Below are positions 3,521-28,571 of a stretch of DNA of 64,000 nt, piece after piece (position 1 is the first letter of the stretch; the number at the start of each line of letters is the position of its first letter). Both the position numbers and the translations under genes were made by a program. The notes below the pieces were generated by a model. The model saw only the letters and a list, made by a program, of their open reading frames with translations. It ran no database searches and was not told the origin of the DNA. This DNA comes from Pristiophorus japonicus (taxonomy: Eukaryota). The stretch is from NCBI RefSeq assembly GCF_044704955.1, contig NC_091989.1, forward strand, positions 85,374,001 through 85,438,000. Direction: 5' to 3'.

Positions 3521-5632
3521 AGAAACATCGAAACAAAAAATGTTACAACGCAGAAGGAGGACATTTCTGCACATCGTTCCTGCGTGGGCTGACAAAGAGT
3601 CGCATGTCCCTCACTCAGCAGCCCTGAAGTTTACTTATAAACCCATGAACAACGAACAATGGCAGAAAGGTAAATCACACCCAGCACAACCAGTCCACTC
3701 CACACACCTGCGACCCCCTTTAAACTGAAACATTCTACACAGCACGCCAACAGCAACCATGGTAACCCATGGGAGGGCCAGAAACCGGATTAAAACTCAG
3801 GCCAATTTATGGGAATAAAATCTGGTAAAATTCCTCTGCGACCCTTCCAGGCAATCGAATCTAGGCCAGGAGCAAACCCTGGCAGTATTCAATTCCCTGC
3901 AGTACTTACCATTATATCTGCTCCGGCCAACAAAAGGTTATCCAATCTAATCGCAATTTCCAGCTCTCGGTCCATAACCCTGCAGGTTACTGCACTTTAA
4001 GTGACCATCCAACCATCTCTTAAAAGTGCTGAATGCTTCTGCACCCACCACTCTTCCAGGCAGCGAGTCCCAGATCCCACAACACTCTGCATAAAAAAGC
4101 TCCCCTTCAAATCCCCTCCAAGCCTTCCACCAACAACGTTGAACCTATGCCCCGTCATAATAGACCCCTCCACCAATGGAAATGTGCCCTTACTATCCAC
4201 TATGTCCAGAACCCTCAATATTGTGTACACTTCAATGAAGTCTCCTCTCAACCTCCTCTGTACCAATGAGAAAAAAAAAACAGCCTATCTAAGCTGCACT
4301 GATAACTAAGATGCTCGATTCCAAGCAGCATCCTTGTAAATCTTCTCTGCGCTCTCTCGAACGCAATCAACTTCTTCCTATAATACGGCGACCAGAGCTG
4401 CATGCAGGACTCCAGCTGTGGCCTAACCAATAATACAATTGAAGCATAACCTCCATACCTTTATGTTCTATGCCTAGGCCAATAAAGGCAATCATTCCGT
4501 GTTCCTTCTCAAATAACTTATAACCCTGGCCTGCTACTTTCAGGGAATCTGTGGACCAATGGTGGAGTTTTAGAGGCGTGGCCTATTCAGTTGGAGCCTC
4601 GTGCAGTGAGAGAAGGAGCTTGCTGTTGTTGCTCCTGCCTGGAAGGCATTGAGTGAGACCTGAGACCAGCCCAGGAAGAGGAGGAGGGGGCTGGCTTACT
4701 ACAATTCAACGTTCAGAGGGAGAGGAGGAGAGCAGAAAATGTATTCACTTATTACTACTACAGAGAGTTGGAGAGAGGGGGAAAATGTATTCACTTATTA
4801 CTACTACAGAGAGTTGGAGAGAGGGTGAAACAGCCCAGAAAGAGGAGGAAGGGGCTTTCTACAATTCCAATTCATCCAGAGGGAGAGGAGGAGAGCGGAA
4901 AATTCAACAACTTTAATACTGCTGCAGAGAGTTGGAGAGAGGGGGAAAAAAGAACAACTATCCATTGTGGTAGGATGGAGAAACTTCATCAACCAAAGGT
5001 GGGTATGTTTTGGTGCATTCCCCTAACGACTTTGTTGTATCGGTGGGGGGATGAAAGAGGACTTGCTAGAGGGCCAGAATATCGCGGGGGGCGGGGTGTG
5101 TGTGTGTGTGGAAGTGTGTGTGGGGGTGTTGCTTACCACACACCACTGAAGCACCCCTCCCCCATTGCCTAGCCTGGGATAGCTGCAGCTGCCTGGCTGA
5201 AGAACTATTAATCATCGTTGGGAGTGTGTGCCTGGGTGCCTCCAGCTGTCCCAGGTGAAGACATCTTCACCCCCCACCCGAAGGCCATCTACAAAGACTG
5301 TGTTTTTTTGCCATCAACTGGGGAGTGCACCCAAGAAAAACAACCACCCATCGCTGTGAGGGGAGACCTGCCCTCACAGCTTCCCTCTTTCCCACCCCCC
5401 ATCGCTTTCTCTCTCTCTCTGGCTCTCCCCTCTCTCTCTGAGAGCCCTTTCCTCCAAATTGTAAAAACAATTAAGACAACTGAGCAGAGGGAGCAAGGCC
5501 CCTCCCCAATTGTCAACTAGGGGAGAGGTGTGCCTCTTTTAGAGTTCCCTCTGTTCAAATACCAACGAGGCCATTTAAGACCATTAAGGCCTGTGACTTT
5601 GGGGTGGGTGTGGCCCTTAAAGGGACCCCGTG

Positions 5633-7733
5633 ATGGCGACCCCATCCACGCCGGTGGCAGGGCCAGCAAAGACATATGTGCAGGCAGTGTCCACATCTAC
5701 GGCGCCTCCTGCGCCTCCTGCTGCCCTGCCACCGTTCAGACTAATAACAAAGAAACACGGGGTCAAGAGTTACACTCACCCCACAATGAGCATTGAGGAG
5801 TGCGTGCGGGCGATGGCTGGTGTAGTCGGCCCCTCGGCCATTGTCGCAGCCTCCAAGATGTCTGGGAAGGCTGTATTCTTCCTGGGGTCGGAGCGGGCGG
5901 TGTCCCTGGCCCTTGAAAAGGGGTTCACAGTGGGTGAGACTTTCCTGCCAGTGGACCCTCTCGAGGTCACCGCGCAGAGGGTCATCCTTTCTAACGTCCC
6001 GCCCTTTTGTTCCCGCTGGGCTCCTCCTCCCTCACCTACACCAAATGGGAGAGGTAAGGCCAGGGATCAACCCCATACCACTCGGCCTCAGGGAGAGCAG
6101 CCTGCGCCACATGTTCTCGTTCCACCACCAGCTCTTTGTCCAGCTGGCGCGGGAGACGACGGAGGGATCATTTAATGTGGTGCACGAGGGGACTACCTAC
6201 CATGTCTTCTGGACATCGGACGGCGTGCGGTGCCATGCCTGTCGGGAGGTGGGGCTTGTTTGTAAGAACTGCCCCGCCTCCAAGGCCGCCAAACCACCGA
6301 GGGTGGCAAAGGCTGGCGCTGCCGCCACCCCTCCCCCTAGTAGCGTCCGCGTGCCGGGAGCTGTGGATGCGCGGGCATCGTCGGGGGCCTTTGTTTTCAT
6401 GGCCTCCGGCGGGGGAGAGGGAGAGCGTCCGATTGGAAGGAAGGTGCGGAGGAAGGCAAAACATCTCGAGGCGGGTCCCCTCAGTGCGCCAGACAATTTG
6501 ATCACCGCGCTCAGCCCAACCCTGTCACCTGCGAGCGCGGGGTGCCCTGAGCCCCTGCCCGAGCCCTTGACCAATATCACAGAGGGGCTCGGGCGCGGGC
6601 AAGATAAGAAAAAGGGGGGAGTGGAGTGGGAGGCCTCGGCAGACATGGAGGTCTCCCTGCCTCCGTGCCTCCCCAGGAATAAAAGGAGTCGCCGCTCCAA
6701 TAAGGCGGAAGGGGAACAACATCCCTCTGCGGAGGAGTCGGTGCCCGCCGCGTGTCCCGCGTCTCCCACCAGCGCCCCCAAACTGCACTGTAGGTGAGAG
6801 GAGTCTGCCCCCGGGGAGGGTGAGACTGTAGAGGCTGCCCAGCCTCTGCCTCCCGGGGATGGCGCGGAAGATCTGCCTGGCATGGGGGGCGTGGGGCCAG
6901 CGGAGGAATGCGTAGCCGCCGGGTCGAGCGTCCCGGGGACTGAGGCGGGCGGGGCCGAAAAGGCCGAACCTGAGCCCGCCCAGCTATTAACCAACTTCCC
7001 CCGGGAGTCACTCAACCCAGAAGAAACAAAATATTTCAACAATTTTAATGATTCTGTACACGCTGGGCCGTGGGGTGGCGGCGGGGAGGGGGAGAACAAC
7101 AACCCTCGTCCCCGACATTGGGGCTGGGGTACTTGGAGGACCTGGAACATTTCTTTGACCAGGTCTCTCCACGTTCCCCGGCTCCTGGGGCGAAGGAGGA
7201 ACCCCTTCCGCTGTCGCTTCCTGACCCAGTACCGCTTTTAAAAGAGTTCAGTGGGGACTCCTCTGCCGACGATCCTGGTGGTGGGATCGGGGCAGAGCCA
7301 GGGTCGGATGGAGCGGTCGGGCCGTTTGCCATACCTCGTGCGGTCAACGGGCCGGCTGCTGGCGGCGACCTCGCGGAGGGGGACGGGGACTCGGTGGGGG
7401 ACTCGGGAGAAGATCTCGAGACAATCGCCAGTGAGGCGGTGGATCTCCTCGTGCCCACCGCTTGAATCCCGCCTCATTCCTGCAAAGGAACTCCGGGACT
7501 TTTTGGTCCAGAGCCAGGGTCGCCGCAACCGAGCCCATCTGGCCCTGGAAAGATGGTCCGAGCCGGGGCTGCTCGTCGCGTCCATCCGCGCCGCCGCTAA
7601 AACCATGGCCGCGGGCGGGCCCTTATCAAAGGCGCAAGGCCTTGAGCTGCGCCGGCTCAAAAGGTTCCTCGCAGGGCTGCTGAAGGAGTGGAGGTCAACA
7701 AACGACTCCACTACCCCACCCACAATAGGTTAG
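5633..7733 (+). pseudogene. Tx1 ORF1 (gag-like, zinc knuckle), disrupted
   Basis: KHGVK...VGPSAIVAASKMSGKAVFF...LSNVPPF...PLGLRE..LRH.FSF resembles Xenopus Tx1 ORF1. The knuckle reads CHACREVGLVCKNC (His changed to Leu). Frameshifts at about 6008, 7070 and 7463; stop at 6795-6797. Confidence 0.9.
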
Positions 7734-7758
7734 GTAGAGGTTGCACTCTGCTTTTGTC

Positions 7759-10700
7759 ATGAAGATAACCATAGCAAGCCTCAACATCAACGGCGGCCGA
7801 GAGGCACACCGTAGATTTAACTATTTTTCGCTCCTGCGGGAGGGGAAATATGCAGAATGCGTCCTGCAAGAAACCCACACCGTTCTGGGAGACGAAGCCA
7901 CGTGGATCCTGGAATGGCAAGGAGAGGTCCGCATGAGCCACATCACTACCACTTCTTGTGGGGTGGCCATCTTGTTGGCCCCGCATTATCAGCCGGAGAT
8001 CTTGGGGGTCGAGGAGCCCGTGCCAGGCCGCTTGCTGCATGTCACGGTTCGCCTGGGGGATGTGCCGCTCCATCTCGTGAACGTGTACGCCCCTCAGCCC
8101 GGCCCGCAGCAAACGCGCTTCTTCGAAGAGGTGTCCGCTCTTCTTGGCTCCGTCGACGTCGGCGACTGCATTGTCCTCGGGGGGGATTTTAACTGATCTC
8201 TCGAGGGACCGCTCCAATGCCCCGCACGCCATGATGGCGATGGAGAAGTTGAGTGACATGGTCGGGTCCTTCGACTTGCTGGACGTCTGGCGAAATCTCC
8301 ATCCCGACTCCAGCGCCTTTACTTTGGTGAGGCCTGGAGTAGGATGGTCCAGAGTCAAACCGGCTTTACGTGTCTCGGGCGTACGTTTCCTGTGTCCCGG
8401 CGGCCTTCATGCGGCCGGTGCCGTGTTCGGACCACCACCTGGTGTTGGCAGAGCTCGCTTTGCTCCGCGTGAGGACGGGATCTGCGTACTGGCATTTTAA
8501 CAACCAGCTGCTGGAGGACGTGCAGTTCCAGGACTCGTTCCATCGATTCTGGTCCGACTGGAGAAGGAAGCAGGGGGGCTTCCCCTCCTTGAGACTATGG
8601 TGGGACGTGGGCACGGCTCACGTCCGTGTCTTCTGTCAAGAGTACGCGAGGGGGTCGACCAAGAGGCGGGCGGCCAGGATCGGTCATCTAGAAAAGGAGG
8701 TGCTCGACCTGGAGTCCCATCTCGGTCAAGTCGTCGAGGACCCGGCGCTGCAGATGGTGTACGACGTGAAGAAGGCCGTGCTGAAGGACCTGCAGCTCTT
8801 CGGTTCCGTAGTCATGTTCGTGAGGTCGCGGATCCGTTTACTGCAGGATCTGGACCACGGCTCCCACTTCTTCTACTCGCTGGAAAAAAGACAGAGTGTC
8901 CGTAAGCAGCTTTTGACGCTGCTGGCCGACGATGGCTCTCTCGTCTCGGATCCCGAGGGCGTCAACAACAGGGCCCGTGAATATTACAGGGCTCTGTTCT
9001 CTCCGGAGCCATCCAGCAAAGAAACGCGTAGAGTTTTGTGGGAGGACCTGCCGAAGGTCAGCCCGGAGGGCGCCGAAATTCTGGAAGCTCCGCTAAGCCT
9101 GGCGGAGCTGATCGGCGCCCTCGGCCGGCTCTCGAGGGGAAAAGCCCCAGGGCTGGACGGGCTGACGGTGGAGTTCCACAGGGCGTTCTGGGACGTCCTT
9201 GGGGGTGACTACGCACGGGTTCTGGGGGAATGTCTGGCGACAGGGGAGATGCCCCTGTCTTGGCGCAGGGCAGTCATCGTCCTGCTGCCTAAGAAGGGCG
9301 ATCTCCGCCTCCTTAAGAACTCCCGCCCGGTCTCCCTCCTCAGCACGGACTACAAAATCTTCGCCAGGGCGATGTCTGCTCGCCTTGGCGCCATGCTGGA
9401 CCACATGGTCCACCCCGACCAGTCCTACACGATCCCGGGCCGGACAATCCACGATAACATCCATCTGGTCCGTGACCTCATCCATCATTCCCAGGAGGTT
9501 GGTCTGTCGGTCGCCTTCCTATCTTTCGACCAAGAGAAGGCATTCGACAGGGTGGATCACGACTATTGAACTCTGCGCGCTTTCGGGTTCGGGACGCATT
9601 TCGTCGCCCAGATCCGACTTTTGTATGCCGCCGCGGAGTGTCTGATAAAGGTTAACGGGTCCTTGACGGCGCCCCTTCGCTTTGGGAGAGGGGTGCGCCA
9701 GGGATGCCCCATGTCCGGCCAGTTATATGCCATCTGCGTGGAGCCTTTCCTGCGGACGAGGTTGACGGGACTGGCTTTGTAAGGGCCGGGCATGGAGGTC
9801 GTCCTCTCCACTTACGCCGATGACGTGTTCCTCGCTGTGGAGGATCCCGCTGACCTGTGGAGGATGCGTGAGTGCCAGGAGATTTACTCGGCCGCATCCT
9901 CCGCCAGGATCAACTGGGAGAAATGTTCCAGACTCCTGGTGGGTCAGTGGCGGGTGGACTCCCTGCCGGAGGAGCTCAGGCCTTTTGGCTGGAGCACGAC
10001 CCATCTCCTTTATCTGGGAGTCTACCTTAGCCCCGACGAGGAAGCCTGGCCGGCGAACTGGCAAGAGCTGGAGGCCAAGGTCGCCGCTCGCCTAGGGCGC
10101 TGGACAGGACTGCTCCGAGTGCTGTCCTACAGGGGTCGAGCGTTAGTCATAAACCAGCTGGTGGCCGCCATGTTGTGACCACTCCCCCTGCGTTTGTCAC
10201 CAAGATACAGAAGAAGCTGGTGGATTTCTTCTGGAACAACTGGAAGCACTGGGTCTCAGCCGCGGTCTTGAGTCTCCCGCTTGGGGAGGGCGGTCAGTCA
10301 TTGGTGTGCGTCAGCACCCAGCTCGCGACTTTCCGTCTTCAGACCCTGCAGAGATACCTTTACGTCGAGCCCCCTCCTAGGCGGCGTGCTCTGGCGACGT
10401 ATTTCTTCCGCCAGCAGCACGGCCTCAACTACGACACGCAGCTCCTATTTGTGAGCTTGGGGGGCGTCAGGACCGCTATCCAGGAGCTGCCTGTCTTTCA
10501 CAAGGAACTCACCAGAGTCTGCAACAAAGTCTCCACCAAGCGCAGCGCTCCACCGGCTGGAGTGACGGCTGTCATGCAGGAGCCGCTGCTCGGGAATCCA
10601 TACCTCCACGACCGAGGTTTTAGGTGGCGGTCGGACAAGAGGGCTGTGGCTGGTGAGGTGACCAGGGTCAGGGACCTGCTCGATGGCGGAGGAGCAGGCT

Positions 10701-11619
10701 GGATGGCGCCAGACACGCTGACGTGGCGCCTAAATTCCGCCAACGTCCGCCGCGCGGCCGATGCCATCGAGTCGCTAAAGACAGCTCTGGGCCCCGACTC
10801 CGTTAGGTGTGTCGAGGAGGCTCAAGCATGTGGGGAGATCCAGTCCGAACTGACTCCCGTCCGGACGGAATTCCTCATCGGCGCCAAACCCCGGAACCTC
10901 CCTCAGGAGCCGGCGCCTCACAACTTGAGCCGCCTCGAGGAAATCCCCTTCGTGCCTTTCAGTTCCGCGCGGAGGGGTTTCCTGTACCGGCTGCTCCTGC
11001 ACACTCTCAACTTTGCCAACCTCACCTGCCGTCCGGACACGCCATGGCATACCATCTTGCCGTCCAGAGGAGAAGGGGGCTCCGATGGAGGGCACTCTAC
11101 GCGGGAGTCCTCCCAGTATTTATAGTGGACTTGGCCTGGAGGGTGGTGCACGGAGCAGTGCCATGCAATAAATTTTTACGCCAGATCACGGGCTCCCATG
11201 CCGCCTGCAATTTCTGTGGTCTGGAAGAGTCCGTGTTCCATGTTTTTATTGAATGCACGAGGTTGTAGCCCCTGTTTTATTATTTAAAGGGGCTTCTCCT
11301 GAAATTCTGGCTGCACTTCATTCCCACACACCTGATCTTTGGGCACCCTGTGCGGAGGGGAGCGGGTAGGTCCGAGGGCCTCCTCGTAGGACTGCTCCTG
11401 GGCACAGCCAAGGGTGCCATCAACCGGCCCAGGCAGCGGGCGGTCAAGGGTGTTGTTCAACCTGACTGCCTGCCTCTCTTCCGCGCGTACATCTGCACCA
11501 GGGTGTTCCTGGAGATGGAGCACGCGGTGTCCACCGGTATGCTCGCGGCCTTCCGCGAGAGGTGGGCACCAGAGGGACTGGAGTGCATCATCATGCCCGG
11601 CAACCAAATTTTAATTTAA
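7759..11619 (+). pseudogene. Tx1 ORF2 (APE endonuclease, reverse transcriptase, C-terminal CCHC), disrupted
   Basis: Endonuclease motifs: SLNING, LQETH, GVAILL, NVYAP, GGDFN, SDHH. RT motifs: GKAPGLDG, PKKGD, DQEKAFDRV, YADDV, YLGV. C-terminal CNFCGLEESVFHVFIEC. Several frameshifts, small deletions and stops. Confidence 0.93.
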
Positions 11620-14600
11620 TTTTATGTTTTAAAGTTTAATTTGTTTTAATTGCCAATGTTTTTACTGTCCCCCTCCCCCTTTTATAGGGGGCAATGGGGA
11701 GAAAAAAAAATATGATTTTAGTGCCCAAAAAAACTTGAAAAAAAAACAAAAACACAAAAGAAAAGGGCCTTGGACATGTTTGGTGTGCCCCCCAGATCGG
11801 GGGGACACGATTTCAGGATTAATGATTTAGTTTCCTCCCAGAAGAGTTTTGTGGACATACACTCTAATATCCCTTTGTCCATCAACACTGTTAAGTGGCA
11901 TATCGCTGAATGTATATACCTTTTCCTTATTAGCCCTCCCAACGTGCATTACTTCACACTTCTCTGAATTAAATTCCATTTCGCACTGCTCTGCCCACCT
12001 GACCAGTAGATTGATGTCCTCCTGCAGACCATGACTTTCTTCTTTATTATAAGCCATACAGCCATTTTTAGTGTTGTCTGCAATCATCTTAATCATAATC
12101 CCTCAAATCAATAATAAAACTTCGATATGTGCCACAAAAAGCAAGTGACCCAGTACTGAGCCCTGCGGATCCCCACTGGAAACATCCTTCCAGTCACAAA
12201 AACATCCATCAACCATTTCGCTTTTCTGCCTACCTCTAAGCCAATTTTGGATCAAACTTGCCACTTTGCCCTTTATCCCATGGGCTTTAACCTTCTTGAC
12301 CAGTCTAGCATTTGGGGTGTTATCAAAAGCTTTGCTAAACTCCATAAACACTACAGCTTATGCATTACCTTCATCGACCCTCTTTGTTAACTCGTCAAAA
12401 TATTCAATTACGATCTTCCCATAACAAAATTCCTCCTGACTCCCCTTAATTAATACTTGCCTTTCGAAATATAGATTTACCTGACTTTCAGCAATTTTTC
12501 CAATAATGTCCCCACCACTGAGGTTAGGTTGACAGGCCTGTAATTAAACGGCCTATCCCTTTCACCCTTCTTAAACAAGGGTACTACATTAGCAGTCCAG
12601 TACTCTGACACCATGCCCAAAGCCAATGAGGGCTGGAAAATCATCATCAAGGCCTCTGTTATTTACACTTTTACTTCGCTCAACTTTCCATCCGGGCCTG
12701 GGGAGTAAACTACTTTCAAAGCTGCTAAACCCATTAATACTTCATCTATCACTATATTTATTTCACCCAGAATATCACATCCCTCCGCGATATCAGTATG
12801 TGCATTGCCACTCTTCTTTGTGAAAACAGATGCCAATGATCATCTGTAACAAAGCGTGATGTCATGCACATTGTTATTTTGAACATAAAAGCAATTGAAA
12901 TACATTAAAAGACTGTAAGAACAGAATAAAGTCTATATATTTTCCAAAGTTAAGAGCATTTTCTTATACAATTCCATCTCTAAATGTATGAATGCAGGTG
13001 ATCATTCTGTTGGAATTACTATCGAACACTGTCAATATCAATAATAGCCGCTTATATTGTGACCACCTTAACTCATTATCTTTCTTGCGCATTAAAATGC
13101 TCAAAGTCATGCTGTTCACCATAATATCTTGGGCCACGTTGTTAATAGAGTTAGTCATTCCATGCAGACCTATACCAAAGGGTTCCAGGTACACGTATTT
13201 GTGAAAATTAGTAAATCACAATATCCTTATCGCTAAGAAGAATCATCTCCCCCTTTCCGTGTTCTAAACAGATCAGGTCACCGATAATAATGAAATCATT
13301 GAGCACAATGGCCGTTGCCCAGCTCATTTAATAATCCGGCTTGCAGAGTGCCACATTCCAATGAAATAAACGAAACCGGGCATGGTCCTGAATTCTTGCC
13401 CTAAAATCTGCAGTCTACTTCAGATTCTTCTTGGACAGAGGAGGGCAACGCCGGGCTGCAGTAGCAGCTAGCGAGTCATGCCTTGGTCTAGACCTGAAAG
13501 AGAGGACTCAAGATTGAAGGATCGGGGTTGAACACCACGAGTCGGGACTGATGTTTGGGAGAATTTTTGGAATAGACACTCTACTGGCAGCTGATTTCTG
13601 TTGTCACTATTTGAATGTCTTGTTTACTAAATTGTGATTTTTTTTTTCCAATTTTCAAAATCAGATACAGGATTTTTTGGGCTGATTGTAATTGGTCAGA
13701 AAGAGTTTTCACTGTCCGTAATAGGATTAATAAAATCCCATTATAAAAGTTAACCAGTTGACAATAAATTTTCCAATTGCACAATTCTCACATCGCGCCA
13801 TGTTCATCTCTTTACTTCACAAGTTTTTATGGGCTCTGTGCACGTTCAGTTTCAGGTTACAAAACTTTTTTCGTAGCTGACCTTTTTTTCCATTGAGGCG
13901 ACCCATATTTGTGATCGGCGTTTCTAATTAGAAGACTGGTTTCATCAAGGTGTCTCTCCATGTTTCGGTACATATTTGTGTATTTTATCGTGTGATTTAT
14001 GTGTATCGGTTTTATAGTAAATCTCTGTGGGGAGATTGCATTCACCCTTGACACGCAATTTGTTGAGGAGCCTTGGTCGTGTTCCAGGCTGTTAACTTTA
14101 ATATTGTCGGTTGATGATCTGGGACAGCATTCATCAGTTCCATTATCATGCAATTCCTGAACTGTACTTTTCCAGAAAATATTATACATTTGAAATCTGA
14201 TACAGTCGCCTTGGTCAGAGCTGCTTGGGTATGATCACTTTTTAATGTATGACTGGTGTTGAGCAGGTGATAAACAGCTGCATGTTTCTCCGAATATCTG
14301 TTTTGCAATAGCGAACGCATTAAGTGGCTGGACGAGTTCACAGGGGTCAGGGAGATAAACAGTTTATCAGACATGTAAATTCCGCCAACCAGATGACTCT
14401 CGTGGTCTCCCGGTGAAGATCGGGGAAAGGATTTAATTTGCCATTTGTGCATCATTCAGCAAGTATAAACATTATCAAATCAGAATATGCTCCATCAGTC
14501 ACTCCAACTACAATATAAAAAGTTCGATTTCATAGAATAGAGGCTGATGACACGAGTTTGAATAAATTACAAATATAAAAATAACAATCATTTTCATTTA

Positions 14601-14980
14601 AAAGTGTAGGCACCGGTGGAAAGCAACGATTTGCCATTGTCATGCTTAGCACAAAATGTATCATTACTAAAGTGTAATTGCTAATGAAGTAGGTCTGAAA
14701 CCTAGTATTACGCAATAACACGTGGCCATTATGCACATCTATTTCAATACATGTGTGTGTTATGATACAGCCAATCGTTTTGATCTTCTATCTAATGTTA
14801 AGATGTGGTTCCTATCCATATTTAGCTTTGACCGCCACCTACAAGTTCAACGAAAATGACTGCGCTTATGAAACACAGTTAAGAGCTAGTGTTCTATTCT
14901 TTCCATTATTGCAAAGTTTCCATTGAGTTGCTTTCAACCATTATTATCTCCCTCTAAGCGGTCGTAAGACTTTGATCCGC

Positions 14981-15035
14981 ATGTTCCTGACAACTGTCGC
15001 TCAGTACGTGTGGCTGTTATTGATCATGCTTACAG
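14981..15035 (+). CDS. IgSF VJ-C1 receptor gene, exon 1 (leader peptide)
   Basis: ATG at 14981 gives hydrophobic MFLTTVAQYVWLLLIMLT. A phase-1 donor G|gtata at 15036 opens an 83-nt intron that splices in frame to the V exon. Confidence 0.8.
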
Positions 15036-15118
15036 GTATATTTTGTTTTTTTTTCTTTCATTTTCCATGCTCCACGATATGTGTCACTAGTCTTTCTATA
15101 CATATTTTTTCTTGACAG

Positions 15119-16454: not shown

Positions 16455-16624
16455 GTAAGATCCTGACAATTTTACAGATACAGAGAACTGCTGCTAACAG
16501 TTACATTTATTTTTGATCATCAATGTTCGAAACAGCCATAACAATTAACTACATTTAGAAAGAGTTGTAATGGCAAAATCACTAAATTCACTCGTTTCGA
16601 TACTAGGAAGATAGAAAACACATT

Positions 16625-19146
16625 TTCTTTTGAAAGAGATGGCTATAGAGATAGTAGATGCATTGGTTGGCATCTTCCAAAATTGCATAGATTCGAGAAC
16701 GCTTCCCACAAATTGCAAGCAAATACAACTTCGCTATTTAAGAAAGGAGGGATAGAGAAAAAGGGGAAATACAGACCTGTTAGCCTGACATCAGCAATAG
16801 GGAAAATGCTCGAATGTATTGTTAAGCACGTGACAACAGGGCAATTAGAAAATAGTAATAGGATTGGGCAGAATCAACATGGAGGGTTGAAATGGAAACC
16901 AAGTTTAAGACATCTGTTAGACAACTTTTTCCTCAGCTATTGCTGGTCATCAAATATTTACAATCTGTATTAATGACTTGAATGAAGGGACCGAGTGTAA
17001 TGTAGGCAAGTTTGCTGATGATACAAGATGGGTGGGAAAGCAAATTGTGAGGAGGACACACACAATCATCAAAGGGAGAAAGACAGGCGAGTGAGTGGGC
17101 GAAATTTGGGCAGATGGACTGTAATGTTGGAAAAAGTGAGGTTATCCACTTTGGCTGAAATAATAGAAAAGCAAATTATAATTTAAATGGAGAAAAAGTG
17201 CAAAGTGCTGCAGTACAGAGAGACCTGTGGGTCCTTGTGCATGAAACAAAAAAGTTAGTATACAGGTAGAACAATAATCAGGAAGGCAAATGGAATGTTG
17301 GCATTTATTGTAAGGGGATAGAGTGTAAATGCAGAGAAGTCCTGCTAAAAGTGTACAGGTTATTGGTGAGGACACACCTGGAGTACTGCGTACAGTTTGG
17401 GTCTCCACATTTAAGGAAGGATAGACTTGCATTGGAGGCTGTTCAGAGAAGCTTCACTAGGTTTTTTTCGGAGATGAGGGGGTTGACTTGTGAGCATAGG
17501 TTGAATAGGTTGGTGCTATATATTGAGTTCAGAAGAATGAGAGGTGATCTTATTGAAACTTATAAGATAATTAGGTAGCAGGACAAGCTAGATGTGGAGA
17601 AAACATTTCCAATCATAGGCGAAACTGAAACGAGGGGACAGAGTCTTAGAATAAGTGGCCGTACATTTAAAACTGAGATGAGGAAACATTTCTTCTCACA
17701 GAGAGTTATACAACTATGGAATTCTCTGCCCTCAGGAATGTGGAGACTGGACAATTTAATACCTTTAAAGCGGAAATAGACCAATTTTTGATCGATAAGG
17801 GAGTAAATTGTTATGCAGAGCGGGCAGAAAAGTGGAGCTCAGCCTTGTTTTTCCAATGGCGCAGCAGATTTGGCGGGTGGGGGGATGGTCTACTCGTGTT
17901 CCTCTTTCTTACGTTCTTATTTTCTTATCTTTGAGGTTGTAACTAGCAAAATAAACAAGTGGGTCCAGTGAATGTAGCGCAGTTGGATTTTCAGAAAGCA
18001 TTCGATAAGCTGCCATGCAAGATGTTATTGAACAAAATTAGCGACCATTGTATTTGGGGTAATATGGATTGACAATTGCTTTCCAGACAGAAAACATAGC
18101 GTAGGAATAAAGGCCGATTTTTGGGTTGGCAGGCTGTAACTAGTGGGTTGCCACAAGGATCTGTGCTTGGACATCAGCTATTAAGAATCGATATCAATGA
18201 TTTAGATGAGGGGACTACATGTATTATTTCCAAGTTTGCTGATTATACAAAGCTAGGTGGGGATGTAAGTTGTGAGGAGGATGTAAAAAGAGTTCAAGAG
18301 GATATAGTCAGAGTAAGTTAGTGGGCAAGAACATGGCAATTAAAATATAAAATATAAAATATAAAATAAGATGTGCGAAGTTTTACACTTTGCTAGGAAA
18401 AATGGAAAAGCAGAGTATTTTTTAAGTGTTGAGATATTGGGAAATGTTGGCATTTAGAGGGACCTGGGTGTCCTTGTAGATGAAACAATGAAAGTTAACT
18501 AGCAGGTATAGCAAGCAATTAAGACATTAAATGGTATTTTATCCTTTATTACAAGAGGATCTGAGTATGCGTAAAGACATCATTCTGTAATCATATAGGG
18601 CCCCGGTGAAAACGCACCTTGAGTATTGTGTACAGTTCTGTTCTCTATATTTGCCATTGACAGAGTGCACCGAAGGTTCATCAGTCTGATTTCTGGGATG
18701 GGGTTATTGACCTCTAAGGATATATTGAGTAGACTATTCTTTAGAGTTTAGAAGAATGAGAGGTGATCTTACAGAAATATATACAATTCTTAAAGGGCTT
18801 GATTGTATAGATGAAGTGAGGATGTTTCCGCTGGCTGATGAGTCTAGAACCATGGGTCACAGTCTCAGAATAAGGGGTCAACCAACTAGGACTGAGATGA
18901 TGGGAAATATTCACTCAGAGGGTCGTGAATCCTTGGAGTTCTCTACCCCAGTGGAGGCTCAGTCTTTGACTATGTTCAAGACAGATTGGTAGAATTTCGA
19001 AGATTAAGGGAATGAGTAATATGGGGAGAGTGCAGGAAAGTGGAGTTGCGGAAGTAGACTAGCCATGATCTTATTGAATGGTCACGTGGCCGAATGGTCA
19101 CGTGGCCGAATGCCCGACTCCTGCTCCTAATTCTTATGTTCTTATG
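16625..19146 (+). mobile_element. Degenerate CR1 (16625-16930 and 17930-19146) with a second CR1 nested inside (about 16931-17928)
   Basis: Outer copy: [14 protein letters not shown], resuming with FEVVTS...PQGSVLG, tail ttcttatgttcttatg at 19146. Inner copy: LVRTHLEYCVQF and FRRMRGDLIE, tail ttcttattttcttat at about 17915-17928. Confidence 0.85.
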
Positions 19147-21116
19147 ACACTCCATCTCAAATAGAAAAATAGAAACAGAGAAACATAGAAATTTACAGCG
19201 CGGAAAGAGGCCATTTCCGCGCATCGTGTCTACGCTGGCCGACAAAGAGCTGCTGGCCCTACATCAGCTGCCGTGAAGGTTACATACAAACCCATCAACA
19301 ATAACGGAAAGGCAAAGAGCACCCAGCCCAACCAGTCCGCCCCACACCACTGCAACACCCCTTATAATAAAAACATCTACACCCCACTACAACTGGAGCA
19401 ATATGATCTCCTGGGAGAGAAAGAAAAAACACATAAAAACCCAGGCCAATTTAGGGAGAAAAAATCTGGGAAAATTCCTCTCCGACACATCGGGGCGATC
19501 GAAATTGGTCCAGGAGATCACCCTGGTCGTATTCTATTCTCTGCAGTACTCACCATTATAACTGTGCCGACCAAAAAAAGGTCATTTGGTCTAATCACAA
19601 TTACAAGCTCTAGGTACGTAACCCTGCAGGTTACGACACTTTATGTGCCCTTCCAACCATCTCTTAAAAGTGATGAAGATTTCTCCATCCAGCACTCTTC
19701 CAGGCAGCGAGTTCCAGATCCCCACAACCCTCTGTGTAAAGAAGCTCCCTTTCAAATCCCGTCTAAACCTTCCACCAACCAGCTTAAAACTATGCCCCCT
19801 CGTAATAGCCCTAACCACCATTCGAAAGAGAAGCTTAAAATCCTCTATGTCCCGGAGCCTCACTATTTTGTACACTCGATGAGGTCTCCTCTCAACCTCC
19901 TCTGTTCCAATCAGAACAAACACAGCTTATCCAATCTGTCCTCATAACTAATATTCTCTATTCCAGGCAGCAGCCTAGTAAATCTCCCCTGCACCATCTC
20001 TAGTACATTCATTTCCTTCCGATAATACAGTGACCAGAAATGCACGCAGTACTCCAGCTGTGGCCCAACCAACATATTATCCAATTTACGCATAACTTCT
20101 CTGCTCTTATATTGTATTCTTTGGCCAATAAAGACAAGCATTCCCTATGCATTCTTACCCACCTTATCCACCTGGCCTGCCACTTTCAGGGAATCTGTGG
20201 ACCAGTAGTGGAGCTTTGGAGGCATGGCCTATTCAGTTGGAGCTGTGCTGTGGTGAGAGAAGGAACTCCCTGCTGAAGCTCCTGTCTGGAAGGCCTGGAG
20301 TGAGCCCTGAGACCAGCCCAGGAAGAGGAGGAAAGGGCTGGCTTACTGCAGTTCAACATCCAGAGGGAGAGGAGGAGAGCAGAAAAATGTATCAACTTTA
20401 TTACTGCTACAAAGAGTTGGAGAGATGGGGAAAAGAACAACAACCTGTGTGGAAGGAGGGAGATTCTACAACATTCTACAGGTGGGTGTTGGTGCATTCC
20501 CCGAAAGACATTGTTTTATTGGTGGGGGGAGAAAAGAAGATTTTCTTCGAGGCCCGGAACATCGCGGGGGGTGTGTGTGTGGAAGTGGGATCTTGCTTAC
20601 AGCTAGGCCCACACACCAATGACGCACCCCTCCTCCATTGCCTAGCCTGGGATAGCTGGAGCTACCTGGCTGAAGATTTACTAATCACCCAAATAAACAT
20701 CGTTGGGAGTGTGTGCCTGGGTGGCTCCAGCTGTCCCAGGTGAAGGCATCTTCTCCTCCCACCTGAAGACCATCCCATAAGACTGTGCCTTGCTTTGTTT
20801 TCCATCATCTAGGGAGTGCGGCCCAGAAAAACACCTACCCATCGCTGTGAGGGGAGACCTGCCCTCACAGCTTCCCTCTTCCCCGCCCCTGCACTCGCTC
20901 TGTCTCTCCCTTCTCTCTCTGAGAGCTCCTTTTCTCCTTAATTGGAAAACAATTAAGACAACTGAGCAGAGGGAGCAAGGCCCCTCCCCAATTGTCAACT
21001 AGGGGAGAGGTGTGCCTCATTGAGAGCTCCTCTGCTCATAAATTCAAACAAGGCCAATTTAAGACCATTAAGGCCTGTGACTCTGGGGTGGGTGTAGCCC
21101 TTAAAGTGACCCCGTG

Positions 21117-23219
21117 ATGGCGACTCCATCCATGCCGGTGGCAGGGCCAGCTAAGACTTATGCGCAGGCGGTGTCTGCATCCACGGCACCTCCTGCGCCT
21201 TCTGCTGCCCTGCCACCATTCAGACTAATTACTAAGAAACACGGGGTCAAGGACTACACTCACCCCACAATGAGCATCAAGGAGGGCGTGCGGGCGATGG
21301 CTGGGGTAGTCGGCCCCTCGGCCATTGTCCTGGCCTCCAAGATGTCTGGGAAGGCTGTATTCTTCCTGGGGTCGGAGCGGGCAGTGTCCCTGGCCCTTGA
21401 AAAGGGGCTCACGGTGGGCGGGACGTTCCTGCTGGTGGACCCTCTCGAGGCCACCGTGCAGAGGGTCATCATTTCAAACGTCCCGCCCTTTGTTCCCACT
21501 GAGCTCCTCCTCCCTCACCTGCACCAACTGGGGGAGGTAAGGTCAGGGATCAACCCCATACCGCTCGGCCTCAGGGCGAACAGCCTGCGCCACGTCTTCT
21601 CCTTCCGCTGCCAGCTCTTTGTCCGGCTGGCGCGAGAGGAGACAACAGAGGGATAATTTAAAGTGGTGCCCGAGGGGACTGCCTACCGCGTCTTCTGGAT
21701 GTCGGATGGCGTGCGGTGCCATGCCTGTAGGGAGGTGGGGCACGTTCGCAAGAACTGCCCCGCCTCCAAAGCTGCCAAACCACCGAAGGCGGCCAAGGCT
21801 GGGGCCGCCGCCACCCCTCCCCCTAGTAGCGTCCGCGTGCCGGGAGCCGTAGGTGCGCGGGCATCGTCGGGGGCCTTTGTTTTCTCGGCCTCGGGCGGGG
21901 GGGAGGGAGAGCGTCCGATGGGGAGGAAGGCGCGGAGGAAGGCGAAACATCTCGAGGCGGGTCCCCTCAGTGCGCCAGAAATTTTGACCACCGCACTCAG
22001 CCCAACCCAGTCATCGGAGAGCGCGGGGTGCCCTGAGCCCGTGCCCGAGCCCTTGACCAATACCGCAGAGGGGCTCGGGCGCGGGCAAGATAAGAAAAAG
22101 GGGGGTGCGGAGCGGGAGGCCTCGGCAGACATGGAGGTCTCCCTGCCTCCGCGCACCCCCAGGAACAAAAGGAGGCGCCGCTCCAATGAGGCGGAGGGGG
22201 AACAACATCCTTCCACGGAGCAGTTGGTGCCCGCCGCGTGTCCCGCGTCCCCCACCAGCGCCCCCAAACTGCGCCGTAGATGGGAGGAATCTGTCCCCGG
22301 GGAGGGAGGGGCGGTCGAGGCTGCCCAGCCTCTGCCTCCCGGGGATGGCGTGGAGGATCTGCCTGTCGTGGGGGGCGTGGGGCCAGCAGAGGAATACGAT
22401 GCCGCCGGGTCGAGCGTCCCGGGGACTGAGGCGGGCGGGGCCGAAAAGGCTGAACCTGAGTCCGCCCAGCCAATATCCAACTTCCCCCGGGACTTGCTCG
22501 ACTCGGCAGAAATAAACAGTATTAACAATTTTAATGAATCTGTACACTCTGGGCAGGGGGGTGGTGGCGGGGAGGGAGAAGAACACCAACCCTCACCCCC
22601 TACTTTGGAGCTGGGGTACTTGGAGGACCTGGAACATTACTTTGACCTGGTCTCTCCGTGTTCCCCGGTTCCTGGGACGGAGGAGGAACCCCTTCCGCTG
22701 TCACTTCCTGACCCAGCACCGCTGTTAAAAGAGCCCAGTGGGGACTCCTCTGTCGACGATCCTGGGGGTGGGATCGGGGTAGAGCCAGGGTCGGATAGAG
22801 CGGTCGGGCCTTTTGCCGTACCTCGTGTGGTCCACGGGCCGGCTGCTAGCGGCGACCTCCTGGAGGGGGACGGGGACTCGGTGGAGGACGCGGGTGAAGA
22901 TCTCGAGTCCATCGCCAGTGAGGCAGTGGATCTCCTTGTGCCCGCCGCTGAGTCACCCCTCATTCCCGTAGAAGAACTCCGGGACTTTTTGGTCCAGAGC
23001 CAGGGTCGCCGCAACCGAACCCATCTGGCCCAAGAAAGATGGTCCGAGCCGGGGTTGCTCATCGCTTCCGTCCGCGTCACCGCTAAAACTATGGCCGCGG
23101 GCGGGCCCTTATCAAAGGCTCAAGGCCTTGAGCTGCGCCGGCTCAAAAAGTTTCTCGCTGGGCTGCTGAAGGAGTGGAGGTCAACAAACGACTCCACTCC
23201 ACCCCCCACAATAGGTTGG
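21117..23219 (+). pseudogene. Tx1 ORF1, copy 2
   Basis: Intact knuckle CHACREVGHVRKNC (Cx2Cx4Hx4C). One frameshift at about 21652. The position of the copy-1 stop (TAG) reads TGG here. Confidence 0.9.
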
Positions 23220-23244
23220 TTAGAGGTTGCATTATGCTTTTGTC

Positions 23245-26200
23245 ATGAAGATAACCATAGCCAGCCTCAACATCAACGGCGGCAGAGAGGCACACCGTAG
23301 ATTTAACAATTTTTCGCTCCTGCGGGAGGGGAAATATGCAGTGTGCTTCCTGCAAGAAACCCACACCGTTCCGGGAGATGAAGCCACGTGGCTCCTGGAA
23401 TGGCAAGGAGAGGTCTGCATGAGCCACCTCACCGCCACTTCTTGTGGGGTGGCCATCTTGTTGGCCCCGCATTTTCAGCTGGAGATCTTGGGGGTCGAGG
23501 AGCCCGTGCCAGGCCGCTTGCTGCATGTCACGGTTCACCTGGGAGACGTGCCACTCCATCTCATGAATGTGTACGCCCCTCAGCCTGGACCGCAGCAAAG
23601 ACGCTTCTTCGAAGAGGTGTCCGCTCTTCTTGGCTCCGTCGACGTCGGCGACTGCATTGTCCTCGGGGGGGGATTTTAACTGCACCCTCAAGGCGAGGGA
23701 CCGCTCCGGTGCCCCGCAGAGCATGATGGCGATGGAGAAGTTGAGGGACCTGGTCGGGTCCTTCGACTTGGTGGACGTCTGGCGAAATCTCCATCCCGAC
23801 CCCAGCGCCTTCACTTTGGTCCAGAGTCGACCGCCTTTACATGTCTCGGGCGTACGTTTCCTGCGTCCCGGCGGCCTCCATGCATCCGATGCCATGTTCG
23901 GACCACCACCTGGTGTGGGCGGAGCTCGCTTCGCTCCGCGCGAGGACGGGGTCCGCGTACTGGCATTTTAACAACCAGCTGCTGCGGGACGTGCGGTTCC
24001 AGGACTCGTTCCGTCATTTCTGGGCCGACTGGCGAAGGAAGAGGGGAGCTTCCTCTCCTTGAGGTTATGGTGGGATGTGGGCAAGGCTCACGTCCGCGTC
24101 TTCTGTCAAGAGTACGCGAGGGAGTTGACAAAGGGGCGGGCGGCCAAGGTCGGGCGCCTAGAAAAAGAGGTGCTCGACCTGGAGTCCCGTCTCGGTCAAG
24201 TCGTCGAGGACCCGACACTGCGGATGGTGTACGAAGTGAAGAAGGCCGCGCTGAATGACCTGCAGCTCGTCGGGTCCCGAGGCACGTTCGTGAGGTCGCG
24301 GATCCGGTTCCTGCGGGATCTGGACCGCGGTTCCCACTCCTTAAGAACTAGCGCCCGGTCTCCCTCCTCAGCACGGACTACAAAATCTTCGCCAGGGCGA
24401 TGACTGCTCGCCTTGGCGCCGTGCTGGAACACATGATCCAACCCGAAAAGTACTACACGGTCCCGGGCCGGACAATCCACGATAACATCCATCTGGTCCG
24501 GGACCTCATCCATCATTCCCAGGAGGCTGGTCCGTCGGTCGCCTTCCTATCCCTCGACCAAGAGAAGGCGTTCGACAGGGTGGATCACAACTATCTGTTC
24601 GGGACTCTGCACGCTTTCAGGTTCGGGATGCATTTCGTTGCCTGGATCCGACTTTTGTATGCCGCCGTGGAGTGTCTGATTAAGGTTAATGGGTCCTTGA
24701 TGGCGCCCGTTCGCTTTGGGAGAGGGGTGCGCCAGGGATGCCCCATGTCTGGCCAGTTATATGCCATTTGCGTGGAGCCTTTGCTGCGCCTCCTGCAGAC
24801 GAGGTTGACGGGACTGGCTCTGCAAGGGCCGGGCATGGAGGTCGTCCTCTCGGCTTACGCCGATGACGTGCTCCTCGCGGCAGAGGATCCCACTGACCTG
24901 TGGAGGATGCGTGAGTGCCAGGAGATTTACTCGGCCGCATCCTCCGCCAGGTTCAACTGGGAGAAATGTTCCGGACTCCTAGTGGGTCAGTGGCGGGTGG
25001 ACTCCCTGCCGGAGGAGCTCAGGCCTTTTGCCTGGAGCACAACCCATCTCCTCTATCTGGGAGTCTACCTTCGCCCCGACGAGGAAGCCTGGCCGCCGAA
25101 CTGGCAAGAGCTGGAGACCAAGGTCGCCGCTCGCCTAGGGCGCTGGACAGGACTGCTCCGAATGCTGTCCTACAGGGGTCGAGTGCTAGTCATAAAGCAG
25201 CTGGTGGCTGCCATGTTGTGGTACTGGCTGGTCACTTTGACCCCTCCCCCTGCGTTTGTCGCCAAGATACAGAAGAAGCTGGTGGACTTCTTCTGGAACA
25301 ACAGGAAGCACTGGGTCTCTGCCGCGGTCTTGAGTCTCCCGTTTGGGGAGGGCGGTCAGTCGTTGTTGTGCGTCAGCACACAGCTCGCGACTTTCCATCT
25401 TCAGACCCGGCAGAGATACCTTTACGTCGAACCCCTTCCTAGCTGGCGTGCTCTGGCGACGTATTTCTTCCGCCAGCAGCACGGCCTCAACTACGACACG
25501 CAGCTCCTGTTTGTGAGCTTGGGGGGCGTCAGGACCGCCTTCCAGGAGCTGCCCGTCTTTTACAAGGAACTCACCAGGGTCTGGAATAAAGTCTCCACCA
25601 AGCGCAGCTCTCCACCGGCTGGAGTGGCAGCTGTCCTGCAGGAGCCGCTGCTCGGGAATCCGTACATCCACGACCGAGGTTTCAGGTGGCGGTCGGACGA
25701 GAGGGCTGTGGCTGGTGAGGTGACCAGGGTCAGGGACCTGCTCGATGGCGGAGGAGGGGGCTGGATGGCGCCAGACACGCTGGTGCGGTGCCTAAATTCT
25801 GCCAATGTCCGCCGCGTGGCCGATGCCATCGAGTTGCTAAAAAAAACTCTGGGCCCCGATTCCATTAGCTGCATCGAGGAGGCTCAAGCACGTGGGGAGA
25901 TCCCATCCGAACTGACCCCAGTCCGGACGGAATTCCTCATCAGCACCAAACCCCGGAACCTCCCTCGGGAGCCGGTGCCTCACAACTTGAGCCGCCTCGA
26001 GGAAATCCCCTCCGTGCCTTTCAGTTCCGCGCGGAGGGGTTTCCTGTACGGGCTGCTATTGCACACTCTCAACTTTGCCATCCTCGCCTACCATCCGGAC
26101 ACTCCATGGCATACCATCTTGCCATCCGGAGGAGGCGAGGGTCCCCGATGGAGGGCACTCTACGCGGGAGTCCTCCCACTATTTATCGGGGACTTGGCCT

Positions 26201-26682
26201 GGAGGGTGGTGCACGGAGCAGTGCCGTGCAATAAATTTTTACGCCGGTTCACGGGCTCCCAGGCCGCCTGCAATTTCTGCGGTCTGGAAGAGTCCGTGTT
26301 CCATGTTTTTATCAGATGCACAAGGTTGCAGCCCCTGTTTTATTATTTAAAGTGGCTGCTCCTGAAATTCTGGCTGCACTTCAGTCCCACACTCCTGATC
26401 TTTGGGCACCCTGTGCGGAGGGGAGCGGGTATGTCTGAGGGCCTCCTCGTAGGACACCTCCTGGGCACGGCCAAGGGTGCCATCAGCCGGTCCAGGCAGC
26501 GGGCGGTCGAGGGGGTCGTTCAACCTGACAGCCTGCCTCTCTTCCGCGCGTACATCCGCGCCAGGGTGTCCTTGGAGATGGAGCACGCGGTGTCCACCGG
26601 TACGCTCGCAGCCTTCCGCGAAAGGTGGGCACCGGAGGGACTGGAGTGCATCGTCACCCCCGGCAACCAAATTTTAATTTGA
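23245..26682 (+). pseudogene. Tx1 ORF2, copy 2
   Basis: APE motifs present, with an extra G at about 23670, a 20-nt deletion at about 23820 and a deletion of about 440 nt at about 24338. After that, 760 codons are uninterrupted (24400-26682) with DQEKAFDRV, GVRQGCPMSG, YADDV, YLGV and CCHC. Confidence 0.93.
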
Positions 26683-26926
26683 TTTTATGTTTTCAGGTTT
26701 ATTTTGTTTAATTGCCGGTGTTTTTTAGTGTCCCCCTCGCCTTTTATAGGGGGCACTTGGAGGCAAAATATGATTTTAATGCCCCAAAATAACAAAAAAA
26801 ACAACAACAAAAAAAACCACAAAAAAAACAAAAAAGGGACTGGAAAATGTTTGGTGTGTCCCCCAGATCGGGGGGCCACGATTTAATGTTTTATGTTTCC
26901 TATCAAAAGAGTTCTGTGGAAACGTG

Positions 26927-27308
26927 TCCGCACGTACATCCGCGCCAGGGTTTCTTTGGAGATGGAGCATGCGGTGTCCACCGGTACGCACGCGGCCTTC
27001 CGTGAGAGGTGGGTGCCGGAGGGACTGGAGTGCATCGTTACCCCTGGCAACCAAATTTTAATTTGTTTTTATTTATTTTACAGTTTGATTTGTTTTAATT
27101 GCCAGTTTTAGTGTCCCCCCTTTTATAGGGTGCACTTGTAGAATTAATGATTTTATGGCCCCCAAATTTTTTTTTTTTAAGTTTTTAAAAATGTCAAAAA
27201 AACAAACCAAAAAAACAAAAAAAGGGCCGTTTGAAAAATGGTTGGAGTGTCCCCCAGATTGGGGGGCATTTGATTTAATGTTTATTTCGTTATCCGACCA
27301 AAAAGAGT
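26927..27308 (+). mobile_element. Tx1 copy 3, 5'-truncated (about 380 bp), in tandem behind copy 2
   Basis: Encodes the ORF2 C-terminus RTYIRARVSLEMEHAVSTG...PGNQILI plus the 3'UTR, ending AAAAGAGT. TCTGTGGAC follows at 27309-27317. Its sequence differs from the 3' end of copy 2. Confidence 0.92.
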
Positions 27309-28571
27309 TCTGTGGACAAGTGCTCCAAGGTCTCTTTGTTCATCTACGCTATTAAGTGGCCTACCACTTAATGTGTATACCATTTCCTTATTAGCCCTGC
27401 CAAAATGCATCACCTCACACTTCTCTGAATTAAATTCCATTTGCCACTGCTCTGCCCACCTGACCAGTAGATTGATATCCCGCTGCAGCTCATGACTTTC
27501 CTCTTCATCATCAACCACACAGCAAGCTTTAGTGTCGTCTGGGAACTTCTTCATCATACTTCCGATATTCAAATTTAATCGTTGATATATACCACAAAAA
27601 TCAAGGATCCAGTGCTAAGCCATGTAGAACTCCAAAGGAAATATCCTCCCAGTCACAAAAACATCCATCAATCATTACACTTTGCTTCCTACCTTCAAGC
27701 TAATTTTGGATCCAACTTGCCACTTTGCCCTGGATCCCATGGGCTTTAACGTTCATGACCATTCTACCATGCAGCACATTATCAAAAGCCTTACTAAAGT
27801 GCATGTATACTACATCGTATGCACTACCCTCATCGACCCTCTTGGTTACCTCCTAAAAAAATTAAATCAGTTTCGTCAAACAAGATCTTCCCTTAACAAA
27901 TCCGTGCTGACTGTCCCAAGTTAATCCTTGACTATCCAAATGCAGATTTATCCTGCCTTTCATGATTTTTTCCAATAATTTTCCCACAACTGACTTTAGG
28001 CTGACAGGTCTATAATTAGTTAGTCTTTCCCGTTTTCCATTCTTAAACAAGGGTACTACATTAGCAGTCCTCCAATCCTCCGGCACCATGCCCATATACA
28101 AAAAGGACAGGAACATGATGGGCAAAGCCTTTGCTATTTCCTCTTTTACTTCGCTGAACAACCTGGGATGCATTTCCTCCCGGCCTAGGAATTATCTACT
28201 GTCAAAGCTACCAAACCCTGTAATACTTCCTCTGTCACTATATTTAATTCAGCCAGAATATCACACTCCTCCTCTATAGCAATATCTGCATTACCTCTTT
28301 CCTTTGTGAAAACAGATGCAAAGTATTCGTTAAGACCCCTACAACAACTTCCACCTCCTCACAAAGATTACCCTCATGGTCTCTAATAGGCCTTACCCTT
28401 TCCTTAGTTACCCTCTTAATCGTAATATATTGATAGAATATCTTAGGTTTTTCCTTAATTATTACTGGCCAATAATTTCTCGTGCTCTCTGTTAGCATTC
28501 CTAATATCCTTTTAAATTTTACCTCTTATCTTTCTATATTCCTCTAAAGTATTCTAAAGTATATAGCCATT

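Follow-up and report, generated by a model that had tools for sequence, protein, structure and literature searches.

Long interspersed nuclear elements (LINEs) that integrate at a specific target are rare in vertebrates and have been studied as natural site-specific integration machines. Many families of the Tx1 clade are target-specific, and the transposons that serve them as targets include a piggyBac element (Tx1D), Mariner-N4_AMi, groups of long terminal repeat (LTR) retrotransposons and Harbinger (PMC4494074). Here we describe a stretch of 64,000 nucleotides from Pristiophorus japonicus (contig NC_091989.1, positions 85,374,001 to 85,438,000), referred to below as the window, in which three insertion events of a putative Tx1-clade retrotransposon are found at a single site within the second open reading frame (ORF2) of another LINE, a member of CR1. 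All positions given below are window positions.

The closest described system is Tx1L of Xenopus laevis. As in the element described here, the ORF2 of Tx1L combines an apurinic/apyrimidinic endonuclease (APE) domain, a reverse transcriptase (RT) domain and a C-terminal zinc-binding motif, and the two are 47-55% identical over approximately 1,290 residues. Tx1L also uses one defined site within another transposon, the piggyBac-type Tx1D, and has precise ends and no poly(A) tail. The two systems differ in that Tx1D is a DNA transposon, whereas in the window a CR1 LINE is targeted within its coding region. Furthermore, the specificity of the Tx1L endonuclease has been shown biochemically (Christensen et al. 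2000, as cited in PMC4494074), while that of the present element is a prediction from sequence, and a relationship through ORF1 was not confirmed.

A second point of comparison is provided by the crocodilian families Tx1-Mar, Tx1-8_Crp/Tx1-4_AMi and Tx1-9_AMi (Kojima 2015, PMC4494074), which also prefer defined positions in other repeats with an orientation that is fixed for each position. Their targets are Mariner-N4_AMi, LTR retrotransposons and Harbinger, in contrast to the non-LTR CR1 ORF2 that is targeted here. These families were defined through genome-wide flank statistics, with a family counted as target-specific when one sequence type makes up >20% of its flanks (PMC4494074), while the present element is represented by three copies in one window. 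Short interspersed nuclear element (SINE) passengers that share the target have been reported for the crocodilian families (PMC4494074). No head derived from small nuclear RNA (snRNA) or 5S RNA was found on the copies described here, and when the window was searched with Rfam there were 0 matches to heads or passengers of snRNA, 5S or tRNA origin.

Target-specific elements of other groups, such as R1/R2, TRAS/SART, Keno, Kibi and Koshi, likewise integrate into an abundant repeat, regenerate their site on insertion and form tandem stacks. Their targets are host multicopy genes or microsatellites, while the target in the window is a second selfish element, from which the site can be lost as that element evolves. 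No description of a Tx1 element that targets CR1, or any LINE, was found in the literature searched, which covered neither Repbase nor Dfam. It is plausible that what is new is the LINE coding region as a class of target, with the machinery and the strategy being those of the known transposon-targeting Tx1 elements.

Three Tx1 insertions share one site

The Tx1 copies are distributed between two CR1 elements, host 1 and host 2. Copy 1 is a full-length element of 7,291 bp on the plus strand (4557-11847), recognized by tblastn with the Xenopus Tx1 ORF2 and by the Pfam families Exo_endo_phos and RVT_1. It is bounded at its 5' junction by the target copy TCTGTGGAC (4548-4556, plus strand) and at its 3' junction by TTTGTGGAC (11848-11856, plus strand), which differs by one C>T change. 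Host 2 contains two Tx1 copies in tandem. Copy 2a, of the full-length class, extends over 6,710 bp of the plus strand (20203-26912) and is also preceded by TCTGTGGAC (20194-20202, plus strand). The middle target copy TCTGTGGA (26913-26920, plus strand) separates it from copy 2b, a 5'-truncated element of 388 bp (26921-27308, plus strand) that retains the last ~45 codons of ORF2 and the 3' untranslated region (UTR). Copy 2b is followed by a further TCTGTGGAC (27309-27317, plus strand), after which the host 2 CR1 resumes.

The geometry of the junctions is the same at both hosts. The sequence CTTTCAGGGAATCTGTGGAC directly precedes the first base of both full-length copies, and the 3' termini read AAGAGT at 11847 (copy 1) and at 26912 (copy 2a), and AAAGAGT in copy 2b. 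A first-pass annotation of this DNA had placed the Tx1 5' starts after 4556 and 20202, and the AAGAGT ends immediately before the target at 11848 and 26913; the junction letters match on both counts, confirming the observation of Tx1 copies at one CR1 site. The annotation was also correct in describing Tx1 as antisense to its host, as the host reading frame is on the minus strand at both loci and Tx1 is on the plus strand. The Tx1 blocks can also be recognized by their GC content, which is ~60% compared with ~40% in the rest of the window.

Three exact matches to the 9-mer TCTGTGGAC are present in the 64 kb, where 0.53 would be expected by chance, and every one of the three is at a Tx1 junction. 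A 21-nt block upstream of the 5' junctions is present in the window at those two junctions only (0 expected). No Tx1 sequence was detected by blastn with copy 2a outside the three copies. All three Tx1 insertions in the window (3/3) therefore share one site, at the same nucleotide and in the same orientation, so that the same target flanks every copy.

As the three events all lie inside 23 kb, they might be attributed to a regional or structural hot spot, in which a fragile or open site in the locus is hit by a Tx1 element that inserts anywhere and recognizes no sequence. Such a hot spot does not account for the use of the same nucleotide, the same orientation and the same duplicated 9-mer in hosts that lie 15 kb apart and are only ~78% alike, or for the lack of any other Tx1 fragment in the window, and its probability is close to negligible.

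The remaining CR1 copies in the window provide a comparison for sequence recognition. Six of these (at approximately 17242, 18478, 29359, 34779, 37412 and 62652) have other letters at the homologous codons, such as GTACAT-CAG-TCATTG, GTGCAT-GAA-TCC... and similar, and contain no insertion, in agreement with the earlier claim that other CR1 families lack the target and are empty. The site at ~29359, which belongs to a CR1 nested in host 2, reads GTACATCAGTCATTG and is empty. Occupancy is 2/2 for CR1 copies with the TCTGTGGAC version of the site and 0/6 for those with other letters, and, although the numbers are small, the contrast fits recognition of the target by its sequence.

Independence of the insertions

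The two host CR1s are separate insertions. Their outer flanks are unlike, no similarity between the two loci was found outside the elements, and a segmental duplication of the locus was rejected on the basis of these unrelated flanks. Host 1 is bracketed by a target-site duplication of its own, CAATGAT (3514-3520 on the left and 12834-12840 on the right), which is the longest word common to its outer flanks, and the 5' end of host 1 at 12833 differs from that of host 2 at ~31035. The separateness of the hosts that had been claimed from their 5' ends and from the duplication at host 1 is thus borne out.

The divergence of the hosts was compared with that of the elements inserted in them using Kimura two-parameter distances (K2P). 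On global alignment of host 1 with host 2, K2P was 0.27 for the left flanks (78% identity, 80% CpG-masked) and 0.24 for the right flanks, where host 2 was represented by 27318-28322 (80% identity, 82% CpG-masked). Between Tx1 copies 1 and 2a, K2P was 0.12 over the first segment of the body (89% identity, 91% CpG-masked) and 0.08 over the second (93% identity, 95% CpG-masked). Divergence within the host pair exceeds that of the Tx1 bodies by a factor of 2-3, and with K2P of 0.24-0.27 against 0.08-0.12 the common ancestor of the Tx1 copies must be much more recent than that of their hosts. Equal branch lengths had been set beforehand as the outcome that would speak against repeated independent insertion; they are rejected because the host K2P exceeds the Tx1 K2P, although the CpG-rich Tx1 should decay faster.

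These distances bear directly on the possibility that a single Tx1-in-CR1 insertion was amplified as a composite, either by CR1 machinery acting in trans or by segmental duplication, so that the junctions were inherited rather than made anew. Inheritance would explain why the junctions are identical, including a shared additional base and a left block that is identical at 31 of 32 positions, and the unlike 5' truncation points and outer flanks, taken alone, are compatible with composite retrotransposition. In a composite family, however, host and insert would be equally diverged, and here the divergence of the hosts is 2-3 times that of a GC- and CpG-rich element that should decay faster than they do. 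There is also no similarity beyond the elements, and CR1-driven copying cannot make copy 2b, a Tx1 3' fragment that is stacked at a regenerated site. A weak further argument comes from sequence depth in public runs, which rises to the Tx1 3' end and not to the 5' end. Composite amplification is accordingly considered very improbable.

Copy 2b is a further independent event at the regenerated site. It is separated from copy 2a by a K2P of 0.21 and from copy 1 by 0.32, and this greater divergence indicates that the site was also used by another, or an older, lineage of Tx1. Its 5' truncation is as expected for the signature of target-primed reverse transcription (TPRT) by Tx1 itself. Whichever of copies 2a and 2b came first, one of the two insertions entered a site that retained only one natural flank.

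The 5' junction and the reading frame of the host

Translation of the host CR1 on the minus strand gives ...EFNSEKCEVMHFGRANKE...VDEQRDLGALVH before the site and SLKVAGQVDKV...EYCV.FWS.YYRK... after it. The RT part reads ...EFNSEKCEVMHVGRANKE...QRDIRVYVH in host 1 and ...QRDLGALVH in host 2. The Pfam RVT_1 match ends ~25-30 codons before the target site, and ~1.04 kb separates the site from the CR1 3' end. In both hosts four bases, AGAT, separate the His codon CAC from the Ser codon TCC, where the CR1 frame needs three. The extra base lies where the left target copy begins (4546-4548 and 20192-20194); the sequence there is GGGA-AT-CTG, although the frame allows just one base between GGGA and CTG. 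It had been claimed that the host CR1 RT sequence is rejoined across the insertion; the frame does resume after the site, but the rejoining is exact only once one base has been removed.

Over the 32 nt that precede the 5' junctions (4525-4556 and 20171-20202), the hosts are identical at 31 positions, against a host average of ~76-77%. The sole other block of at least 31/32 in the ~2 kb host alignment is at 11983-12019 and ~27445-27480, ~130 nt from the 3' junction. To the right of the 3' junction only 12 of the first 20 nt match between the hosts. As an equally conserved block exists elsewhere in CR1, the 32-nt block was rejected as proof of 5' transduction. Three sources can be put forward for the extra base: it may arise regularly when the 5' end is joined, it may come from a leader of CR1 origin that the element carries at its 5' end and that is joined under the guidance of homology, or it may belong to the targeted CR1 subfamily itself.

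The second of these sources forms part of a broader scheme, in which the Tx1 RNA would start in the upstream CR1 flank and the resulting CR1-derived leader would pair with the homologous CR1 stretch to join the 5' end of the new copy, adding specificity beyond that of the endonuclease. Homing of this type would place the extra base exactly where it is found in both full-length copies, at the edge of the left target copy, and would account for an upstream identity that is matched only once in ~2 kb of host alignment. It also has a precedent in the target-transposon-derived 5' extensions reported for Tx1-mobilized SINEU (PMC4494074). Against this, there are only two 5' junctions, the left block encodes the conserved SLKVAGQ motif, and CR1 has another strongly conserved block at 11983-12019. 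The poor conservation of the right flank leaves no role for homology at the 3' junction, and first-strand priming at a fixed nucleotide still demands a specific nick. We consider homology-guided homing to be improbable.

Probable site-specific integration and a proposed mechanism

Three events at an identical nucleotide in two diverged hosts uphold the core claim of the first-pass annotation, that of repeated independent insertion at one CR1 site, and a site-specific interpretation is supported at the scale of the window. We regard it as likely that this Tx1-clade LINE family integrates site-specifically and antisense into the ORF2 of one CR1 family, at the ...LVH|xS... codons, and the family may target this CR1 site genome-wide. 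Several points weigh against this interpretation. The events number only three, and all of them come from a single CR1 family and from 23 kb of a single window. The targeted CR1 subfamily has no empty copy in the window, and the pre-insertion site has thus to be deduced; the candidates are GGGATCTGTGGAC, GGGAACTGTGGAC or a form that already carried the extra base. The shared extra base and the 31/32 block are not predicted by simple nick-and-duplicate TPRT, and a short stretch of left flank could be travelling with the element.

A mechanism for site-specific integration can be drawn by analogy with Tx1L and R1-clade elements (PMC4494074, PMC4640811). The APE endonuclease of Tx1 would introduce a nick immediately 3' to GTCCACAGA in the sense strand of CR1, and the freed 3'-OH would prime reverse transcription of a Tx1 RNA ending in ...AAAGAGU. 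A second nick on the other strand, 8-9 nt away, would give rise to the TCTGTGGA(C) duplication, and the duplication would regenerate the site, allowing later copies to stack in tandem. The 3' junction could be sharpened further if the tail of a read-through RNA were to pair with the primer. On the same analogy, specificity would come from the APE domain rather than from pairing between RNA and target, while a hairpin that is conserved in the Tx1 3' UTR may be the handle recognized by the RT.

CR1 may act as a safe harbour for Tx1. The further claim that insertion disables CR1 was overstated, since host 1 at least was already 5'-truncated and dead. A more far-reaching relationship can be envisaged, in which Tx1 depends obligately, as a hyperparasite, on one CR1 lineage, has reached very high copy number and is inserted in a large proportion of those CR1 copies in which the site is retained. 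CR1 would then escape through changes in the His-Xaa-Ser codons, in an arms race of LINE against LINE, and a CR1-derived 5' leader would leave the extra base as a diagnostic mark. We put this forward tentatively and think it rather unlikely.

If Tx1 does integrate site-specifically into a conserved coding motif of CR1, this would show that selfish elements can serve one another as landing pads at large scale. Successive nested insertions would also provide dates by which the activity of CR1 and that of Tx1 could be ordered, and the arrangement would offer a new pair of endonuclease and target (~9-30 bp) for studies of specificity. For annotation, it explains a recurrent 7-kb GC-rich block within CR1 copies, and composites of this type are not to be read as one family.

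The Tx1 element

The ORF2 of Tx1 was located by tblastn using the Xenopus laevis 'Transposon TX1 149 kDa protein' and a turtle homologue as queries. In copy 1 it extends over 7759-11616 and corresponds to residues 1-1292 of the Xenopus Tx1 ORF2 in frames 1/3/2/1, with four frameshifts. In copy 2a it extends over 23245-26682 and has lost ~437 bp between APE and RT, equivalent to Xenopus residues ~372-521; the deletion is at 24334-24337, and the missing stretch is retained in copy 1 at 8873-9308. Both full-length copies are therefore dead by different lesions, copy 1 through frameshifts and copy 2a through the deletion.

The intact C-terminal ORF of copy 2a (760 aa) matches Pfam RVT_1 (2e-27) and zf-RVT (4.5e-5). 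The N-terminal pieces of ORF2 match Exo_endo_phos at E values of 1e-4 to 8e-4, which miss the cut-off owing to the broken state of the ORFs. In tblastn, the Tx1 ORF2 is collinear with full-length Tx1 ORF2 proteins that contain both PF03372 and PF00078. The architecture of the Tx1 clade, with an N-terminal APE, an RT and a C-terminal zinc-binding motif, is thus found in this ORF2. The best named protein match of the 760-aa query is the Xenopus Tx1 ORF2 (E 1e-215, 47% identity, 99% coverage), followed by Tx1-like proteins of turtle and alligator and then by teleost proteins at 33-36%. One ENA protein, from an 18-kb contig, is 64% identical to the query. On this comparison, which is one of ORF2 similarity, membership of the Tx1 clade is probable.

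ORF1 gives less information. The end of ORF1, seen in copy 2a at 21663-23300 on the plus strand, consists of a sub-threshold CCHC-like knuckle and, after it, a long tail of low complexity that is rich in P/A/G/E. A protein database search with a 545-aa piece of ORF1 returned no homologues at E<=1e-5. With no homologous match and a tail of low complexity, the likeness to the ORF1 of Tx1L that had been suggested was not confirmed.

The 3' UTR contains a variable A-rich stretch and has no poly(A) tail. A G+C hairpin is located on the plus strand ~40 nt before the end of the element, at 11783-11808 in copy 1 and also at 26860-26875 and 27251-27266. Its motif, GUGUSCCCCC-AGAU-GGGGGGNCAC, is kept in 3/3 Tx1 tails in the alignment, and a stem-loop is predicted in all three. 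In the window the motif occurs only in the Tx1 tails; a near-match at 32723-32738 was examined and is not a Tx1 tail. An exact-pattern scan for the motif gave 0 matches in JGI metagenome contigs.

Two further observations concern the 5' end of the element. Tandem Repeats Finder (TRF) identified a 46-bp tandem duplication (2.1 copies, 98% match) in the 5' UTR at 4735-4830, which is found in copy 1 only. At host 2 an ORF of 198 aa (20147-20743, plus strand) has its ATG in the CR1 flank, 56 nt before the start of Tx1, and extends into the 5' region of Tx1. This ORF is probably a chance feature across the junction, and its bearing is on the start of the Tx1 transcript.

Abundance in public sequence runs

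The region 9400-13400 was compared with four public runs in the form of Logan contigs, which are short and broken at repeat branch points. In all four runs the summed contig depth rises 2- to 8-fold to the Tx1 3' end, contig depth being a poor measure. The rise is weak evidence, but its direction is that expected from 5' truncation of Tx1 and the opposite of that expected from composite copying driven by CR1. The summed word depth of Tx1 and CR1 reaches ~0.4-2 million, against ~17 (X1) and ~7.6 (X4) for single-copy flank, and over 9400-12883 the summed depth of Tx1/CR1 is 10^4-10^5 times that of the flank. Taken at face value this suggests tens of thousands of copies, a summed depth not being a copy number. 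No pile of loose ends at 11847/11848 was seen among the matches listed for the four runs. In a run labelled as a second organism, the Tx1 contigs are ~93-97% alike, and from this likeness the Tx1 family would be shared by, or recently active in, a relative.

The host CR1 copies

The 3' part of the host 1 CR1, comprising the C-terminus of ORF2, the 3' UTR and a tail of octamer repeats, is at 3521-4547 on the minus strand, and its RT part is at 11857-12833 on the same strand, where the element is 5'-truncated inside the RT at 12833. The right flank of host 1 joins unique DNA in public contigs with 0-1 differences. In host 2 the 3' part, with a (TTTCTATG)n-like tail, is at 19160-20193 (minus strand), and the RT part is at 27318-28560 (minus strand), with ORFs at 27282-27572 and 27862-28173, both on the minus strand, that match RVT_1.

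Host 2 is interrupted at 28566-~30100 by a nested CR1 of another family, which is on the plus strand and has two long ORFs (189 and 284 aa). As this nested CR1 is additional to Tx1 copies 2a and 2b, host 2 carries three later insertions. The continuation of host 2 upstream of the RT is at 30100-31035 on the minus strand and is its least certain part, with only an approximate 5' limit; minus-strand ORFs at 29935-30297 and 30418-30606 read as CR1 ORF2-like and have no Pfam match.

The tail of host 1 is composed of TTTCNATG-like 8-mers, read as TTTCGATG/TTTCTATC, and that of host 2 of the 8-mers TTTCTATG/TTTCTCTG/TTTCTATT. Both hosts show the characters of the CR1 clade, with a 3' end of 8-nt repeats, an ORF2 with RT and 5' truncation, and are assigned to it by these features.

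Directly to the left of host 1, a CR1/L2-like RT fragment (...KKQDK.NPANY.PIS...) is present at 2700-3500 on the plus strand. Both strands of the window as a whole are densely packed with a mosaic of LINE fragments.

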